Sequence record: OR050627.1
Strand: one strand, 5' to 3'
Length of the DNA stretch: 64,000 bases
Notes under the pieces: generated by a model
The model's database searches: none
The model's input: the letters and a program-made list of their open reading frames with translations, nothing else
What the model was told of the DNA's origin: nothing
Translations under genes and position numbers: made by a program
In this document: positions 10,745 through 49,615 of the stretch, piece after piece
Position numbering within the stretch: position 1 is the first letter of the stretch
Layout: the number at the start of each line of letters is the position of its first letter

Positions 10745-11695
10745 ATGACAAACATCAACGCGACCGAAAGACTCATTGCAATTTTTGCAGATGTACACGA
10801 GCGAAACTTAAAAAATGTACAACGAACTTACGCTACATCAGAATATGATGCTAACGGAAGACCTTACAAAAGTAAAATTAACTACGTCTATGCAGTATTA
10901 AGCCAAGACGTTATGACATCTATGCTGGAGGATTCTAAAATTTATGACTATCCAGGATTTGAATTTACTATTCCGGTTACTGACTTAAGCAAGCTGCCTC
11001 AACGAACTGAACATTTTGCAGTTTACGTTTTAGCCGATGGCTCAGTTATTAACATTTACGTAGACTACAACCAAAAGCCTAATCAAATGGTTATGTACTC
11101 TGCAGAACAAGAATATGACTTTGACAGACTTAGAAACGGCAGCAGGTCAAACCCTACACTAGGCAAAGTTTATTCAAAAATGTATCACAAAATAGTAACT
11201 ACAACACCAGTTACTGATTACTTGGGCGTTATGCTTTATAGACATCTTAACAACTTAGAAAACGTGCATACTAAATTTTATATGCTAATTTCTAGCAATG
11301 CTGCAAAGTATTTGAAAGATGAGGCTGACTTAACTGACCAACTAATGCTAACAAAAATTTCGGAAATTAAACACAATAAGTCAAGATTTGGCGTGTTTAA
11401 GCCTAAATACGATGTTAGTGGATATGGTCGTAAATTCGCAAATATTCTCGAAAACCATGCAGAAATTCAACTAATAGAATGTCATGACAAAGAATCTTCT
11501 ATTAACCAAGCGCATGCATATCCTATGGCAGTAGTGCTTACTAAGTACGTTATGCATAACCGATTCGACCAGGAATTAACACATTCGCCTATGAATCCAA
11601 ATGACCATACGCCAAAATCGCTAACATCTGAATTGATTGAGGATATTTTACAGCATTCTATAAAGCAACAAAACAAAGTTTTTTTAAAAAACTGA
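10745..11695 (+). CDS. Hypothetical protein, possibly two degenerate gp23 A-domain-like repeats
   Basis: Likely start ATG 10745 (leader ttttaaaaca). YVYAVLSQDVMTSM...INIYVDYNQKPNQMVM and FYMLISSNAAKYL...RKFANILENHAEIQLIE resemble the gp23 A-domain pattern. Confidence 0.4.
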   Translation: MTNINATERLIAIFADVHERNLKNVQRTYATSEYDANGRPYKSKINYVYAVLSQDVMTSMLEDSKIYDYPGFEFTIPVTDLSKLPQRTEHFAVYVLADGSVINIYVDYNQKPNQMVMYSAEQEYDFDRLRNGSRSNPTLGKVYSKMYHKIVTTTPVTDYLGVMLYRHLNNLENVHTKFYMLISSNAAKYLKDEADLTDQLMLTKISEIKHNKSRFGVFKPKYDVSGYGRKFANILENHAEIQLIECHDKESSINQAHAYPMAVVLTKYVMHNRFDQELTHSPMNPNDHTPKSLTSELIEDILQHSIKQQNKVFLKN

Positions 11696-11741
11696 CTAAA
11701 ATATGCAAAGCAAGTAAAACTTTATGGTTTTATATTTTCAC

Positions 11742-11766
11742 GTTTCAAAAATTTTTCTTATATTTG
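11742..11766 (+). promoter_or_regulatory. Bacteroidota-type early promoter (TATATTTG)
   Basis: TAnnTTTG at 11759-11766 upstream of the truncated MCP paralog. Confidence 0.75.
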
Positions 11767-11793
11767 TAATACAAAATAACACATAACAAAACA

Positions 11794-12528
11794 ATGCAAA
11801 ACAAACCAATCTTAACAAGAGACCAAAAGCTAGCAATCCTAGGAGATAACCCACATAACTGGGACGTAGACAACTTGGAAATTGTACAAGACATTGCAAT
11901 TACTAACGAATTTGTGCATCAGGCTAACGAAGCTAACTACAAAACTTTGCTAGGCTTAGGCTGGACAAACCACTACACAATTAACTTGCTAGACAAAATT
12001 AACATCAACTATTTTATTGCTACTCCGGAAGTTTCAGGAAAACCTTCAAGTGACTTCAAAATTTCAATGAGGAATCACTTTGACCAGGATGTTTCAGAAG
12101 ACTTAGGCACTACACCAAATGCAGAAGCTGGAACTGGCTTAGCTAACCTGTGGACTAGGCAAAACGCTTTAGTTGCACACTTATTTAGAGCGTCAAGCAT
12201 TATGAATACTATGTACGGTAACTTTGGCAAGACAATAATCGTAAACACGCATCTTGCTGCAGCTATAAAAAGTACAAATTTATTCAAGCCTACGCCAATT
12301 GAGGAATTGGTTGAAACTTCTACATCTACTATGCCGTACGTTGCAGGAACAATTACTACTGAAGATGGCAAAATGTCACTGAAAGTTGTTGTTAATCCTC
12401 AGCAACCTTGGGCAGACACTACGGCAATCCTGCATGATGGTGAATTTGACTTTCAGACAATTGACATGGAGGATGGCTTAACTTCAATTTCATTCGCATT
12501 TAACAATGACATTGGCCCATGGGCATAG
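11794..12528 (+). CDS. Truncated major-capsid-protein paralog (A-domain region only)
   Basis: ANLWTRQNAL / IIVNTHLAAAIKS / YVAGTI / NPQQPWADTTAIL / FNNDIGPWA align by eye to MCP ENLWTRQRRV / VVVNSQLMAAIKE / YYAGTI / DPNMKWNDTTAIL / FDNGFGRWA. Confidence 0.85.
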   Translation: MQNKPILTRDQKLAILGDNPHNWDVDNLEIVQDIAITNEFVHQANEANYKTLLGLGWTNHYTINLLDKININYFIATPEVSGKPSSDFKISMRNHFDQDVSEDLGTTPNAEAGTGLANLWTRQNALVAHLFRASSIMNTMYGNFGKTIIVNTHLAAAIKSTNLFKPTPIEELVETSTSTMPYVAGTITTEDGKMSLKVVVNPQQPWADTTAILHDGEFDFQTIDMEDGLTSISFAFNNDIGPWA

Positions 12529-13622: not shown

Positions 13623-13654
13623 TTTTCATATGTCAAATAATTGTTATATATTTG
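13623..13654 (+). promoter_or_regulatory. Early/middle promoter TTTTCATATGTC-N12-TATATTTG
   Basis: Motif family member with fixed spacing. Confidence 0.8.
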
Positions 13655-44784: not shown

Positions 44785-45300
44785 ATGAGCAATACATTAG
44801 CCTTACCGGATAGCAAGCGGTTTGCAGACAACAAAATCATTCATTCATTATTCCGTAACTATATCGGAATATATCATTACAGTGGCCCTTCGCCAAAATC
44901 TCCAGATGCTAAACAAACTAAAAAGTTTAGTGAACATGGCTATCAAATGGTAAACAGAGAGGACGGCAAACCTTCACATTTTTACATTTTTGACCCTACA
45001 GATGATCCTAATAATTATTTCAGACTGCAGATAATTTGGGCCTTTGATACAATTAATCGCATACTTAAACATTATGACCTGTCAGTAACTTTTGAATTTA
45101 TTGACGTAGACTTTTGGCAATTCTTTTATTCTGAGTTTTTGAATAAACCTGCAGCTGAATCTAAACGATATAAATTTGTGGAAGGTTTAAGAGGTTTTGC
45201 ATCGCAAACACGAGGATTAGCATCTTACGGTTATACAATTAATGATGTTTTAGCTTTTGAAAAAGTACAATTATCAAAATACAGACTTAATAAAAGATAA
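44785..45300 (+). CDS. Hypothetical protein
   Basis: 171 aa, A-rich leader. Confidence 0.65.
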   Translation: MSNTLALPDSKRFADNKIIHSLFRNYIGIYHYSGPSPKSPDAKQTKKFSEHGYQMVNREDGKPSHFYIFDPTDDPNNYFRLQIIWAFDTINRILKHYDLSVTFEFIDVDFWQFFYSEFLNKPAAESKRYKFVEGLRGFASQTRGLASYGYTINDVLAFEKVQLSKYRLNKR

Positions 45301-45397
45301 CCGGCCCCGCTAAGCGTTGATTTGGAATTATGCCTTATCTGTAATACGCCTTAGCCGAGCAATCTTGGCAGGTAGGTACCACTGGGCCAAGCGTTAT
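45297..45397 (+). ncRNA. Candidate structured RNA (unclassified)
   Basis: About 52% GC island (counted over 45301-45390) with several complementary segments, lying between a stop codon and terminator 45403-45433. Confidence 0.4.
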
Positions 45398-45402
45398 TTA
45401 TA

Positions 45403-45433
45403 AGCCTAGCACTCAAAAAGTGCTAGGCTTTTT
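45403..45433 (+). terminator. Intrinsic terminator downstream of the candidate RNA
   Basis: aagcctagcact/agtgctaggctt with T-run. Confidence 0.85.
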
Positions 45434-45448
45434 GCGTTAAAAATGTTG

Positions 45449-45498
45449 AAAATAGTTGCATAAAAATTTTCAGATGTCAAATAATTGTTATATATTTG
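45449..45498 (+). promoter_or_regulatory. Full promoter AAAATAGTTG...ATGTC-N12-TATATTTG
   Basis: Upstream of the PolB-like fragment operon. Confidence 0.8.
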
Positions 45499-45569
45499 TA
45501 TTATAAAATTAAGGTAATAACATACAATTGATAAAATCATAAACAACTAATTTTTAAAACATTCATAAA

Positions 45570-46433
45570 ATGAACAAATTCACAGAAAGCCTAGATAAAT
45601 TCAGGCTTAACCCAGAACAACTACAAAACCTAATTTGGGCGTTAAACAAAAGATATGACGCGGAACCTGCAGTAAACAATCCTAAACAAATGACTACTGT
45701 CGACGTCGGCATGCTGTATGGAAATTATGCATTTACTAGCAACTACAGACGTATGGCAAATGCTTTAATAAAAGATGCTAAAATTGTAGGCGACTATCCT
45801 CACTTCTTTACTGAAATTGATGATTCCAGGGAGTTCTTTACTACGCATTTAACGTCTAAACTTTCGCATCGTAGCTGCAAAGCTAACGCGACTATCGTAG
45901 ACAAAGATTACCTTGAAGATGTATACTTCATAGAGTTAAAACGACTTTACACTGCGCTTTTCGTAAAATCATTTGTAGATGGGCGACTTGAAGTTGATTT
46001 GAATGGATTTAAGGAATTGTACATTGCATTGCATTTACACTTAGAAGACTTCAAGCAATATGACGAATTGCGTAAAACTAACACTGCATATATGGCTAGG
46101 TATATTATGAATGCATTTTACGGAGTTATTTGCGGCAAAGCCAATGCAAAAGTATTCCAAATTTCAGGACATACTCAACCAATATTCTACGACTTCTACA
46201 AAAAGCTTAATGAAATTGTACCAACCGAAAAGCTAATTATGCTTTCTACTGACGATTTATGGCTGCCGCAAACAAATGAATCATTGGAAATTCTTAAAAA
46301 AATGATTACGTTATGCGAAGACTACGGTGTACACATGGACTTTAGCAAACTTAGACATTACAAAGTTGAACGTAACATTCTACGTAGAACTTTAGGAATT
46401 CCTGCAAACAGACCTAACAAAAACACCAGATAA
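45570..46433 (+). CDS. Truncated, degenerate family-B DNA polymerase palm/fingers domain
   Basis: IELKRLYTAL (motif A, DxxSLYPS), RYIMNAFYG (motif B, KxxxNSxYG) and LSTDD (motif C, DTDS) occur in the correct order; 287 aa. Confidence 0.65.
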   Translation: MNKFTESLDKFRLNPEQLQNLIWALNKRYDAEPAVNNPKQMTTVDVGMLYGNYAFTSNYRRMANALIKDAKIVGDYPHFFTEIDDSREFFTTHLTSKLSHRSCKANATIVDKDYLEDVYFIELKRLYTALFVKSFVDGRLEVDLNGFKELYIALHLHLEDFKQYDELRKTNTAYMARYIMNAFYGVICGKANAKVFQISGHTQPIFYDFYKKLNEIVPTEKLIMLSTDDLWLPQTNESLEILKKMITLCEDYGVHMDFSKLRHYKVERNILRRTLGIPANRPNKNTR

Positions 46434-46437
46434 TATC

Positions 46438-47316
46438 ATGACAAAGAATATCGAACTTTTACAAAAAGAGGCTAAATCATGTCCAAGACTAATTAAGCCG
46501 TTTACTACCGTACATAATGCATTAAAGCAAGCATTGTTTGCTGGCCATAAGAAATTCAAACTTTACAAAGTCGAAGCATTCGACATTTACAAAAATAACC
46601 TTGCTGACGATGACTATGAAGTTATGATTGACAATTTGGCTAACAATGCGTCGACTAATTGTGACAACTGGGATAACTACGCATCTTATGTTACTAAACA
46701 ATCAGTTATTAGGGCAATTTCGACAAGAGTTATTGCGTTTACTAAAGCAGAGCCTCATAGATTGCCTTACGTTACTGGTGTTCTTGGAGGCAAAAGCGTA
46801 ACGTTAGCTAACGTAACAGCATATGTACGCAAGCATATTGAAGAGGTTGACATGTCCAAAGTTACACTTAATGTTGCCGAAGAAAACAAAGATACTGCTT
46901 ACGAAAAATGCAACAAAATTTTAGCATCCGGCGAATATGGCTTAATTGCTTTGGGCACTACTACATTTGCAATAGTTAAACGTCTAAAAGGTGGAAAATT
47001 CGATGTAGCGTACAATGTTAACGTAATATTCAATCCTGTAGCTGAAATTTACGCAGTAATGGTACAAACTCCTGAACAATTTAAAGAATCTAGCGATGAA
47101 TACTTATTTGCATTTACATCTGAAGAGCCTACTGCTTTGCTAACTATACTTAACATTTACTACGTTAAGCCTTCCATTGAATTAAAAAGTCATTCATGTA
47201 TCTGCGGATTTAAGCCGGAACGTACTACGTTAGAAACGTTCTACCGCATAACGCAAGGACTGCTTGAACATACTTTGATTAACTTTGGAAATGTTGAATA
47301 TGGATCGCTATCATAG
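46438..47316 (+). CDS. Hypothetical early protein
   Basis: 292 aa, in operon. Confidence 0.65.
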   Translation: MTKNIELLQKEAKSCPRLIKPFTTVHNALKQALFAGHKKFKLYKVEAFDIYKNNLADDDYEVMIDNLANNASTNCDNWDNYASYVTKQSVIRAISTRVIAFTKAEPHRLPYVTGVLGGKSVTLANVTAYVRKHIEEVDMSKVTLNVAEENKDTAYEKCNKILASGEYGLIALGTTTFAIVKRLKGGKFDVAYNVNVIFNPVAEIYAVMVQTPEQFKESSDEYLFAFTSEEPTALLTILNIYYVKPSIELKSHSCICGFKPERTTLETFYRITQGLLEHTLINFGNVEYGSLS

Positions 47317-48031
47317 ACAAACATACGACAGCCTGGCGGAACGCACTACAACGTACCGCCAGGCTAAATATAAAGCTTTTACGTCACTTAGCCAAACTGA
47401 CTTAACGTTATGGGCGTTATACAAACAAGACGTAAACGCTTTTAGATTGTATAGCTTTGAAATGGCTGGACATAAATATTTTGTAACACATGACGATAAT
47501 AGCAACTTAGAGTTGTTACGTCAACAATGTATTGCATATGGACTTATGTACTTTCATGCAGCTTGGCTACACAGTACGTTACGTAGAGAAGGTTTTACGT
47601 TAACTGAGTTAACGCCGGATAACTACAAACTAACAGGAACTAAATTGTTTGACTCTACATTAGCTAAGTCAGATGTCGCTGATATTATCGTACAAAATTC
47701 AGCATTGCGTCTTATTAGAGCTAGTTCGGCTAATGGAAGTTTTGCGCATAGCATAAACATTTACAACAAAAAGGTTATCATAACGTCACGCTATCATACG
47801 TCAAATGTTTATGACTTTGAATGCTTTATGCATATGATGCTTTTTATGGCTCGCTATGAAACGTTTTATGCTTTAAGCTTTATAAAAAATATGAAGAATT
47901 TTGGTAGACGATTTATAGCAGATCGTGATAACGTCATAGATTTTTTGACATATGGCGATGTAGTAATAGATCACCTCAACAAATCCAAAATTTCATACAA
48001 AACACTACAAAACAATGTCGACACAATATAA
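47300..48031 (+). CDS. Hypothetical early protein
   Basis: Probable start ATG 47300. Confidence 0.6.
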   Translation: MDRYHRQTYDSLAERTTTYRQAKYKAFTSLSQTDLTLWALYKQDVNAFRLYSFEMAGHKYFVTHDDNSNLELLRQQCIAYGLMYFHAAWLHSTLRREGFTLTELTPDNYKLTGTKLFDSTLAKSDVADIIVQNSALRLIRASSANGSFAHSINIYNKKVIITSRYHTSNVYDFECFMHMMLFMARYETFYALSFIKNMKNFGRRFIADRDNVIDFLTYGDVVIDHLNKSKISYKTLQNNVDTI

Positions 48032-48560
48032 AGTAATTTGCGGTACTGGCCACAGACCAGACAAGCTAGGAGGTTATGACAACCAAGCAGCACACGACTG
48101 CCTAGTGCATTTGTTAATTGATGCTTTACGTGAAATAGAACCTGAATTAGTAATTGTTGGCATGGCTCAAGGTTTTGACCAAGCATTAGCCGAAGCTGCA
48201 TATGAATTAGACATTCCGTTTATTGCAGCACTACCATACAAAGGTCAGGAGTTACGTTGGCCACAAAAAGCTCAACGGCATTATAACTATTTGCTAAGTT
48301 TAGCAAAAGCTATAACAATTGTTAATGAAGGCGACTATAAACCATGGTTCATGCAAACTAGAAATAAATTTATGGTAGACAATAGCCAGGCAGTTTTGAC
48401 AATTTGGGATGGCACGTCTGGCGGAACTTGCAATACAATTGAGTATGCCTCTGGCATGCACAAAAACAATGATTTTGTGTATACTAAACAAAATGAAAAA
48501 CCAATAATCAACATATACGACAAATGGAAAACCAAATACAACTCAAAAACCGGACATTAA
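48015..48560 (+). CDS. SLOG-family protein (YspA/DUF1273-like)
   Basis: CGTGHRPDKLGGY, GMAQGFDQ, RNKFMVDNS, WDGTSGGTCNTIEYA. Confidence 0.88.
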   Translation: MSTQYKVICGTGHRPDKLGGYDNQAAHDCLVHLLIDALREIEPELVIVGMAQGFDQALAEAAYELDIPFIAALPYKGQELRWPQKAQRHYNYLLSLAKAITIVNEGDYKPWFMQTRNKFMVDNSQAVLTIWDGTSGGTCNTIEYASGMHKNNDFVYTKQNEKPIINIYDKWKTKYNSKTGH

Positions 48561-49099
48561 ACGCTTTCGTAAACAAATCTGCTAAACGACAAGATCACGA
48601 ATACATTACATCGGATTGCCTTTATTTAGGTAGTATCACATCATCTACAATAGATTTATGGCTAGGCTTCGACTACAAAGACCCATCTGGATTAGTAGGA
48701 TTTGCTACATTAAATGCCGATGACGAAGCTTTTCAAGTACGTATAGATCATGACGATTCTGAGTATGGCACGTTAGCCGATGAGCACGAATATATAGCGC
48801 TTACTGAAATTCGTAAGCGTGCAGTAGCGCTTAACTTAATTAGCGAAGAGTATTTGAAACTTAACGTTAAGATACATGCAACAAAGGCTGTATGGCTAAA
48901 ACAAAATGGCTGGATTAGAATTGGCGACTATTGGTCGTTACAATATACTAATGGTCCAGGTAGACCGCCGCAGTACGGAACTGATCAAGCATATTACGTT
49001 GCAGTGTTGTCAAGGATTAAACTTGATAATGAAATTCGTTCAACGTTACGAAAGCAAATAGAGGACCAACAAGAACAGTACAAAAAACAAACAAAATAG
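48524..49099 (+). CDS. Hypothetical protein
   Basis: 191 aa, in operon. Confidence 0.6.
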   Translation: MENQIQLKNRTLNAFVNKSAKRQDHEYITSDCLYLGSITSSTIDLWLGFDYKDPSGLVGFATLNADDEAFQVRIDHDDSEYGTLADEHEYIALTEIRKRAVALNLISEEYLKLNVKIHATKAVWLKQNGWIRIGDYWSLQYTNGPGRPPQYGTDQAYYVAVLSRIKLDNEIRSTLRKQIEDQQEQYKKQTK

Positions 49100-49111
49100 T
49101 ACAATAGCAAC

Positions 49112-49615
49112 ATGACAAAACAACAACAATTAGAAAAGCTAGAATGCAAAGTTATCGAATGGGCAGATGCTCGTAATATGTTTGACAAAGACAACGGAGG
49201 CACGATAACAACACAATTATTCAAATTAGTAGAGGAACAGGGCGAAGCATTTTCAGCAAAACTTAAAAACAAGCAGGATTTATTAAAGGACGGTACTGGT
49301 GACCAGAAAGTATGTCTCATAAATATGAAAAAGTTATTTGAGGAATTTGGCCTTGGCCAGGTTGACAGACTTGAACTTTGGGAAAAGTTAAGACTACTTC
49401 AATTAGCTACAATAGGTAAAATTGCAGAAAGTATTTTGACTGACGACAACATTGGTGTAAGCGAGGGTATCAATTCACTTGATGATATTCTAAAAGACTT
49501 GGCTGAGGCTGATGGCCTTGACTTCCTTGAATGCCTTGGTATAGCTTACGACGAAATTAAAAATCGTAAAGGCAAGATGGTTAACCGAACTTTTGTTAAA
49601 GAATCTGACCTTTAG
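49112..49615 (+). CDS. MazG-like nucleotide pyrophosphohydrolase
   Basis: EWADARNM, KLVEEQGE, DGTGD, ECLGIAYDEIKNRKGKMVNRTFVKE. Confidence 0.85.
   Translation: MTKQQQLEKLECKVIEWADARNMFDKDNGGTITTQLFKLVEEQGEAFSAKLKNKQDLLKDGTGDQKVCLINMKKLFEEFGLGQVDRLELWEKLRLLQLATIGKIAESILTDDNIGVSEGINSLDDILKDLAEADGLDFLECLGIAYDEIKNRKGKMVNRTFVKESDL

Follow-up and report, generated by a model that had tools for sequence, protein, structure and literature searches.

Family-B DNA polymerases (PolBs) are among the best-studied enzymes and, to our knowledge, every member known to be active has several domains and exceeds about 500 residues in length. Earlier work describes split PolBs, PolB derivatives that are multi-domain but inactivated, and divergent second family-A polymerases (PolAs) that lack a thumb (PMC7544198, PMC4304020, PMC11348598). 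The inactivated derivatives include the C-terminal module of Pol epsilon, herpesvirus UL8 and chordopoxvirus F12 (PMC4304020, PMC7544198), while the divPolA2 of barbaviruses is a second, divergent polymerase homologue whose palm is conserved and in which no thumb can be recognised (Yutin et al. 2024, PMC11348598). In the open-access literature, we found no description of a stand-alone PolB of 250–290 residues comprising just the palm and fingers.

The DNA analysed here is a stretch of 64,000 nucleotides (the window) of OR050627.1, the record of Chryseobacterium phage MA9V-1, a jumbo phage of 213.5 kb that infects C. indologenes MA9; record coordinates are window coordinates plus 124000. The gene of interest, gp197 (MA9V1_197), is annotated in the record as a ‘hypothetical protein’ and is undiscussed in the genome paper (PMC10537231). 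An initial annotation of the window, made from the sequence, had described its product as a stand-alone miniature PolB palm with altered catalytic motifs. The open reading frame is present on the + strand as described, is an annotated gene and encodes 287 residues. Its ortholog in the sister phage MA9V-2 is 83% identical, with a dN/dS of 0.11 that is similar to that of adjacent genes and indicates purifying selection; gp197 is therefore a genuine gene under selection. All three motif strings quoted in the initial annotation were found and in the correct order, and the substitutions it had listed (motif A Asp to Glu, motif B Lys to Arg, and loss of the first motif C Asp) are all borne out. The gene and its parts are as follows.

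45570..46433, + strand: gp197, an open reading frame of 287 residues, a predicted stand-alone PolB-like palm plus fingers.
45570..45899, + strand: N-terminal part (residues 1–110), with helices at 3–30 and 53–69 and a low-confidence linker at 76–114, from secondary structure and pLDDT.
45930..45959, + strand: motif A equivalent IELKRLYTAL (residues 121–130), from profile alignment to E. coli Pol II 414–431 and gp135 389–407.
46005..46139, + strand: short fingers of two helices (residues 146–190), with a conserved GFxELY segment and K162.
46098..46124, + strand: motif B equivalent RYIMNAFYG (residues 177–185), with R177 in place of Lys, N181 invariant and Y184-G185 conserved.
46242..46256, + strand: motif C equivalent LSTDD (residues 225–229), in a beta-hairpin.
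46347..46430, + strand: C-terminal strand and basic tail (residues 260–287), with K265 and R268 conserved, in the place of the thumb.

Residue roles in gp197 were assigned through motif alignment rather than residue-level superposition, with the structures of RB69 gp43 and archaeal PolBs as reference. On this basis, we take E122, which replaces the metal-ligand Asp of motif A, and D228, the essential second Asp of motif C (the first Asp of DTD being Ser in gp197), to occupy the metal-ligand positions. Y127 lies at the steric-gate position, where the Tyr of PolBs meets the dNTP sugar, and K162 and R177 match the basic residues of the two finger helices that hold the triphosphate in PolBs. N181, Y184 and G185 form the Asn-x-x-Tyr-Gly of motif B, which in PolBs touches the nascent base pair.

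The chain runs on for only 58 residues beyond motif C and has about 110 ahead of motif A, so gp197 lacks an exonuclease domain, an N-terminal domain and a thumb. The initial annotation had proposed the absence of the exonuclease and of most or all of the thumb, and this stands, as the chain is too short and the predicted model aligns to the palm and fingers of a PolB (5mdn residues 349–602). A search for the 3'-5' exonuclease domain with PF03104 matched gp135 alone in the MA9V-1 genome, with no match to gp197, and the structural alignments of both models described below stop at the palm, at about residue 602–619 of 5mdn. A capsid-targeting leader was also considered for gp197 and rejected, as its N-terminus has no xINE-type motif of the kind found on other genes of the window. 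This xINE/xLNE-type motif, probably a prohead-protease or capsid-targeting signal, lies near the N-terminus of the proteins at window positions 2193, 6755, 26903, 28523, 29449 and 52213.

Scans of gp197 and its family members with Pfam, PHROGs, NCBIfam and PADLOC returned no significant family. The DNA_pol_B model PF00136 gave no match even at E<=10 to gp197 or to any of eight members, while the same model detected both gp135 and gp138, which served as positive controls; the only sub-threshold matches were to two ‘DNA polymerase’ PHROGs (E about 0.05–0.07). Word-index searches recovered the MA9V-2 ortholog only, with one more sequence (P0010) added when a profile was used. Six distant metagenomic relatives of 242–280 residues (E 1e-6 to 9e-4) emerged from an exhaustive phmmer search across 1.84 billion representatives, and a family profile then added ORF12 of Flavobacterium phage MaF61 as the ninth member (E 2.8e-18). 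The family known so far thus numbers nine, from three cultured Flavobacteriia phages and six metagenomic sequences, with 18–26% identity between lineages. Searches of cultured phages by tblastn with three other members gave no further isolates, and pattern-based scans of IMG/VR and JGI metagenomes, built on a 4-sequence alignment, gave no matches. The family is small and rare.

The PolB motifs are clearer in the distant relatives than in gp197 by itself. P0008 has near-canonical motifs A and B (ELNSLYPSIY and KYILNSFYGVL), and P0005 carries IDVPALYPTIF and KFILNSFYGIL. Across the family, the motif A residue is acidic in all nine members (Glu in eight) and is followed by an invariant L-Y; motif B has Lys or Arg in eight of nine, an invariant Asn and then Y-G; and the motif C Asp is present in seven to eight of nine. 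The strictly invariant residues are L126, Y127 and N181. The exception is P0006, which has Asn for Lys/Arg in motif B and Cys for Asp in motif C; it comes from the phage most syntenic with MA9V-1 and was seen in two independent contigs. When 208 alignment columns were ranked by conservation, leaving out the near-duplicate MA9V-2 row, the top columns were Y127, N181, Y184, F209, H157, G146, E122, F147, L126, E149, K162 and G185 (the H157 column is Asn in every row except gp197), and D228, R268, K265 and R177 fell within the top 30.

The formal sequence statistics for kinship with PolBs are weak. Searched against the whole PDB, the family profile has a sole match, E. coli Pol II, at motifs A and B with an E of about 1. 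When the family was compared by hhalign with four T4-like gp43 proteins, the alignment covered the fingers and motifs B and C at P 0.11 (8 rows) and P 0.013 (9 rows), the latter placing gp197 residues 142–243 on the T4-like fingers and motifs B and C. In the N-terminal halves of split PolBs, residues 115–133 aligned on motif A of gp135 (P 0.026). As the motif positions score highest in the nine-member family and both models match PolBs first, chance does not account for the motifs.

The AlphaFold2 model of gp197, built from an 8-sequence alignment, has a mean pLDDT of 65.8 and a pTM of 0.71, with the core (residues 115–260) mostly at 70–90. In the model, a strand ending at E122 is followed by a helix, two finger helices (the second containing motif B), a further helix, the TDD hairpin, a helix and a strand; as modelled, this order of elements is the topology of a PolB palm and fingers. 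The N-terminal helices align with the portion of the PolB palm that lies ahead of motif A. The 50 leading rows of Foldseek against the PDB were all PolBs (best E 0.018, probability 0.99). Using VIA-align against 48,161 representative chains, P. calidifontis PolB ranked first (Z 7.7 across 193 residues, model residues 22–275 on chain residues 349–602), followed by Pol alpha (Z 7.2) and, at Z 5.6, the C-terminal module of Pol epsilon, which is inactive, while generic palm proteins such as GGDEF domains and reverse transcriptases reached a Z of about 5 across only ~100 residues.

Because these values were moderate, we made a second model, that of P0008, which is 22% identical to gp197 (pLDDT 72.3, pTM 0.74). 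All 50 of its top Foldseek rows were PolBs (best E 8.9e-4), and VIA-align placed six PolBs (Z 8.5, 8.5, 7.9, 7.0, 6.8 and 6.6) ahead of any other fold; the leading values of the two models, Z 7.7–8.5 across 177–193 residues, are in the range that the tool calls middling. Both models, together with the collinear motif alignment, thus predict a palm and fingers on which the motifs run in the order A, B, C. From the two models, the PolB-specific signatures and the collinear profile alignments, we are highly confident that the gp197 family is a PolB core consisting of palm and fingers. The check by structure prediction that the initial annotation had called for leaves its central claim standing, since the predicted fold matches PolBs first in two members, with the addition that fingers are present as well as the palm.

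The initial annotation had also advised locating the replicative polymerase of the phage, and noted that a separately encoded partner completing an ordinary split replicase would overturn its reading. Searches with PF00136 and PF03104 over the whole records revealed a split PolB in both MA9V-1 and MA9V-2, which in MA9V-1 lies outside the window.

OR050627.1 110343–115296 (record coordinates, strand not given): split PolB region, gp135 to gp138.

The product of gp135 (495 residues) has the exonuclease motifs and a motif A of DFSSLYPS, and that of gp138 (425 residues) has motif B (KTMMNSIYG), motif C (YMDTDS), KKKY and a C-terminus of thumb length. The split is within the fingers, between motifs A and B, with two genes in between, and jointly the two proteins carry every exonuclease and polymerase motif. 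Phages PAU and pT24 have the same split and no detectable member of the gp197 family, while MaF61 has an unsplit PolB of 994 residues together with a family member (ORF12). Since gp135 and gp138 are complete and MaF61 pairs an unsplit PolB with a member, gp197 is an extra protein and not a missing piece; the replicase is encoded elsewhere, as gp135 plus gp138, and no partner makes gp197 part of an ordinary split one.

Neither BLASTP nor the family profile searched over both phage genomes detected any similarity of gp197 to gp135 or gp138, and the family is nearest to short-fingered enzymes, namely Pol II and PolBs of the archaeal type, rather than to T4-type gp43. Compared at the sequence level, gp197 is neither a fragment of the gp43-type polymerase of the phage nor a recent copy of it, and its earlier description as a ‘fragment of a core phage protein’ finds no support in that form. 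A conserved gene of ~270–300 codons lies directly upstream of the C-terminal PolB half in these split loci (gp137, PAU gp109 and pT24_167; BLASTP 2.5e-4 to 8e-4) and may encode a third subunit of the split PolB; a chimallivirus split polymerase with a clamp-derived subunit has been described in a preprint (PMC13648687). The idea of clamp tethering was dropped, because no sliding clamp was located with PF02916 or PF09116.

The surroundings of gp197 in the window contain the following features.

45402..45430, + strand: strong intrinsic terminator with a 12-bp stem, a 5-nt loop and a T tract, ending the upstream lysis-region unit (gp196).
45455..45515, + strand: promoter-like element with a -7 box, TATATTTG, at 45491–45498 that fits the Bacteroidota sigma-A consensus TAnnTTTG.
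46438..48031, + strand: gp198 and gp199, orphans that begin after a 4-nt gap behind gp197, then overlap, and are co-transcribed.
48015–49615, closely packed in the same transcription unit as gp197: gp200 (SLOG/YpsA family), gp201 and gp202 (MazG-like pyrophosphatase).

The long conserved promoter-like element, which ends in TATATTTGTA, recurs at least ten times in the window, including ahead of the genes for both topoisomerase II subunits. Near-identical elements have their -7 boxes at 13647, 17758, 29410 and 57181, and related ones at 11759, 18326, 22179, 53612, 54233 and 56902. TAnnTTTG itself occurs 58 times in the window against 28 in shuffles, that is, twice as frequently. As the element resembles the host sigma-A consensus, early or middle expression of the gp197 unit is plausible. 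No tRNA and no Rfam family were found in the intergenic region upstream of gp197. The promoter core (45463–45512) matches many contigs of a wastewater metatranscriptome. Separately, a 2022 tick-metagenome contig is identical to window positions 45300–45724, so MA9V-1 or a near-identical phage is present in a tick sample unrelated to the sewage from which the phage was isolated.

The initial proposal that gp197 is the first gene behind a full promoter agrees with the terminator and the promoter-like element that precede it in MA9V-1. It does not extend to MA9V-2 (L002:7068-8000), where an equivalent hairpin and T run lie ahead of the unit and an equivalent promoter has the -7 box TATATTTA, but two extra small genes, gp253 and gp254, sit between the terminator and promoter and the gp197 ortholog, which is third.

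The two genes that follow, gp198 (292 residues) and gp199 (243 residues), have dN/dS values of 0.09–0.11, indicating purifying selection, and their products matched no fold or family. Comparisons with the PDB, Pfam, the Atlas and by hhalign showed no similarity of either product to PolBs or to gp197, and these searches give no support to either as a thumb or exonuclease partner. A weak homologue of gp198 occurs in a syntenic metagenomic locus, L013, in which (11203–12378) the MazG part forms the N-terminal portion of a 391-residue protein. The gene order from gp195 to gp202 is retained around the distant relative P0006. The P0005 gene sits between the topoisomerase II subunit genes and, at the end of the MaF61 genome, ORF12 belongs to a block of small genes; because these contexts differ, gp198 and gp199 are not universal neighbours.

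We consider the chances about even that gp197 is a PolB-derived catalytic palm with short fingers, extra to a complete replicase, that acts as a minimal nucleotidyltransferase. Our best reading is that it is a nucleotidyltransferase of this type or, failing that, at least a binder of dNTP and primer-template. Conservation at the positions that would contact nucleotide, metal and primer suggests a functional active site or binding pocket more than an imitation of a polymerase surface. That the first Asp of motif C is missing need not prevent activity, as piPolB and PolB2 share the loss and can be active (PMC7544198), and divPolA2 offers a precedent in phages for a second polymerase that has no thumb (PMC11348598). 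Against catalysis by gp197 are the Glu of motif A in eight of nine members, which is unusual for a PolB, and the degenerate P0006, whose motif B Asn and motif C Cys suggest that catalysis is perhaps not needed in every member. No thumb and no DNA-binding partner were found for gp197, which also counts against the main reading, and the PolB assignment draws mainly on predicted structures from only 8 sequences (mean pLDDT 66 and 72).

The motif A Glu and the degenerate P0006 are the main grounds for doubt, and they make a non-catalytic binder or regulator a serious competing explanation, in which the PolB pocket would bind dNTP and/or the end of a primer-template but perform no chemistry, sensing or regulating the nucleotide pool or acting, by analogy with inactivated PolB scaffolds, as an accessory or structural factor of the replisome. 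We regard this as a real but lesser possibility. Besides the replacement of Asp in motif A, it would account for the persistence in two independent contigs of P0006, which has neither the basic residue of motif B nor the Asp of motif C, and it fits the identity of the strictly invariant residues, which are binding residues and not metal ligands. Neighbours in the same transcription unit are nucleotide-related (SLOG/YpsA and MazG), and inactivated modules (the Pol epsilon C-terminal half and HSV UL8) are among the structural matches. Yet the acidic residue of motif A in all nine members and the Asp of motif C in seven to eight would be unexpected were metal binding irrelevant, and the known inactivated PolBs show the opposite pattern, keeping the architecture and losing the residues. 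An anti-defence decoy, made early as a mimic of the polymerase core to mislead a host sensor of phage DNA polymerase, appears improbable. It would suit an extra, polymerase-like protein behind a host-type promoter, a MaF61 member placed in a small-gene block of the kind typical of early or accessory regions, and a rare, fast-evolving family with so little identity between lineages. However, gp197 has no detectable sequence similarity to the surface of the phage's own PolB and is nearest to Pol II and archaeal-type PolBs instead of T4-type gp43; its conservation sits in buried active-site positions and not across the surface; no PADLOC model matches it and it has no defence context; and we know of no polymerase-sensing system for this host. 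The decoy idea of the initial annotation is therefore not supported in the form in which it was made.

Two further readings carry little weight. The split of the MA9V-1 and MA9V-2 replicase within the fingers, between motifs A and B, might invite the idea that gp197 is a missing subunit that gives palm or fingers elements to gp135 and gp138. This is very hard to credit and was set aside as largely refuted, as the two halves hold the exonuclease motifs, motifs A to C, KKKY and the thumb-length C-terminus, and the split and the family do not co-occur (PAU and pT24 are split with no detectable member, whereas the MaF61 member accompanies an unsplit PolB of 994 residues). It is also very unlikely that gp197 is not polymerase-related at all, its motifs arising by chance and its fold being a generic RRM/ferredoxin-like palm or an AlphaFold bias. 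The absence of significant polymerase HMM matches, the shallow alignments behind the models and the presence of generic palms (GGDEF, reverse transcriptases and ACT-like domains) at a Z of about 5–6 are what such a reading would lead one to expect. Nevertheless, both models rank PolBs first, across 177–215 residues as opposed to 70–110 for the generic palms and including the fingers and the helices ahead of motif A, the top 50 Foldseek rows are all PolBs for each model, and signatures specific to PolBs, which read SLYPxI and KxxLNSFYG in P0005 and P0008, are retained throughout the family.

If gp197 is the minimal nucleotidyltransferase that we favour, it would be made from the host-type promoter alongside genes of nucleotide metabolism (SLOG and MazG) and would bind dNTP and Mg2+ in a PolB-type pocket. 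It would then transfer a deoxynucleotide to the 3'-OH of a primer-template, where templated synthesis is favoured over template-independent synthesis because the Y184-G185 pair, which in PolBs touches the nascent base pair, is conserved. The basic C-terminal tail may bind DNA and, with K265 and R268, could substitute for the thumb. Synthesis would be distributive, of low processivity and free of proofreading, suited to some special task, for example filling gaps, bypassing lesions or extending ends, and not to bulk replication. That the family is a self-sufficient PolB of ~30 kDa, the smallest of its kind, operating with only palm and fingers, a metal site of Glu and Asp, and a basic tail that stands in for the thumb, is a more tentative proposal. 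If true, large Bacteroidota phages would have a polymerase of their own without proofreading, reserved for repair, bypass or the extension of ends.

Among known systems, the short-finger PolBs (E. coli Pol II, the archaeal Tgo/KOD/9N enzymes and P. calidifontis PolB) share with gp197 the palm topology, the motif order and most of the active-site residues; they are its best structural matches, and E. coli Pol II is the one PDB sequence match of the family profile. They differ in size, being about 750–800 residues against about 250–290 in the gp197 family, which has no N-terminal domain, exonuclease or thumb, and gp197 has a motif A Glu, a motif B Arg and no first motif C Asp. The phage's own split PolB, gp135 plus gp138, belongs to the T4 gp43 lineage (split as in PAU and pT24) and to the same superfamily and genome as gp197; it has all domains and canonical motifs but is divided within the fingers; in gp197, a single chain bears all three of motifs A, B and C. 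The polymerase of African swine fever virus (ASFV), Pol X, is a minimal 20-kDa viral enzyme consisting of the catalytic core only and carrying out repair-type synthesis; unlike gp197, it is a family-X enzyme with the Pol beta fold, unrelated to the PolB palm.

Both piPolB and archaeal PolB2/Dpo2 are, like gp197, without the first motif C Asp and yet polymerise DNA (PMC7544198; PMC8764526), although they are full-length, multi-domain proteins with the canonical motif A Asp. The divPolA2 proteins resemble gp197 in occurring in phages that already have a replicative PolB, and their gene neighbourhoods are variable (PMC11348598), but they belong to family A, are much larger and have an extra N-terminal globular domain. 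The Pol epsilon C-terminal module, UL8 and F12 are, like gp197, PolB-derived and found beside an active polymerase. They keep the multi-domain architecture and have lost catalytic residues, whereas gp197 has lost domains and kept most of the residues, so it does not belong to the inactivated-PolB type, with its full architecture and replaced residues.

The gp197 protein could be the smallest polymerase of the family-B type. An active PolB of 250–290 residues, consisting of palm and fingers and keeping the positions for nucleotide binding and metals, would define the minimal catalytic unit of the family, offer a compact scaffold for polymerase engineering and point to a task in large phages that is not done by the high-fidelity replicase. 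If inactive, the gp197 family would be a new kind of PolB-derived pseudo-enzyme, with its domains lost and its pocket kept, the reverse of what is seen in the Pol epsilon C-terminal module, UL8 and F12.
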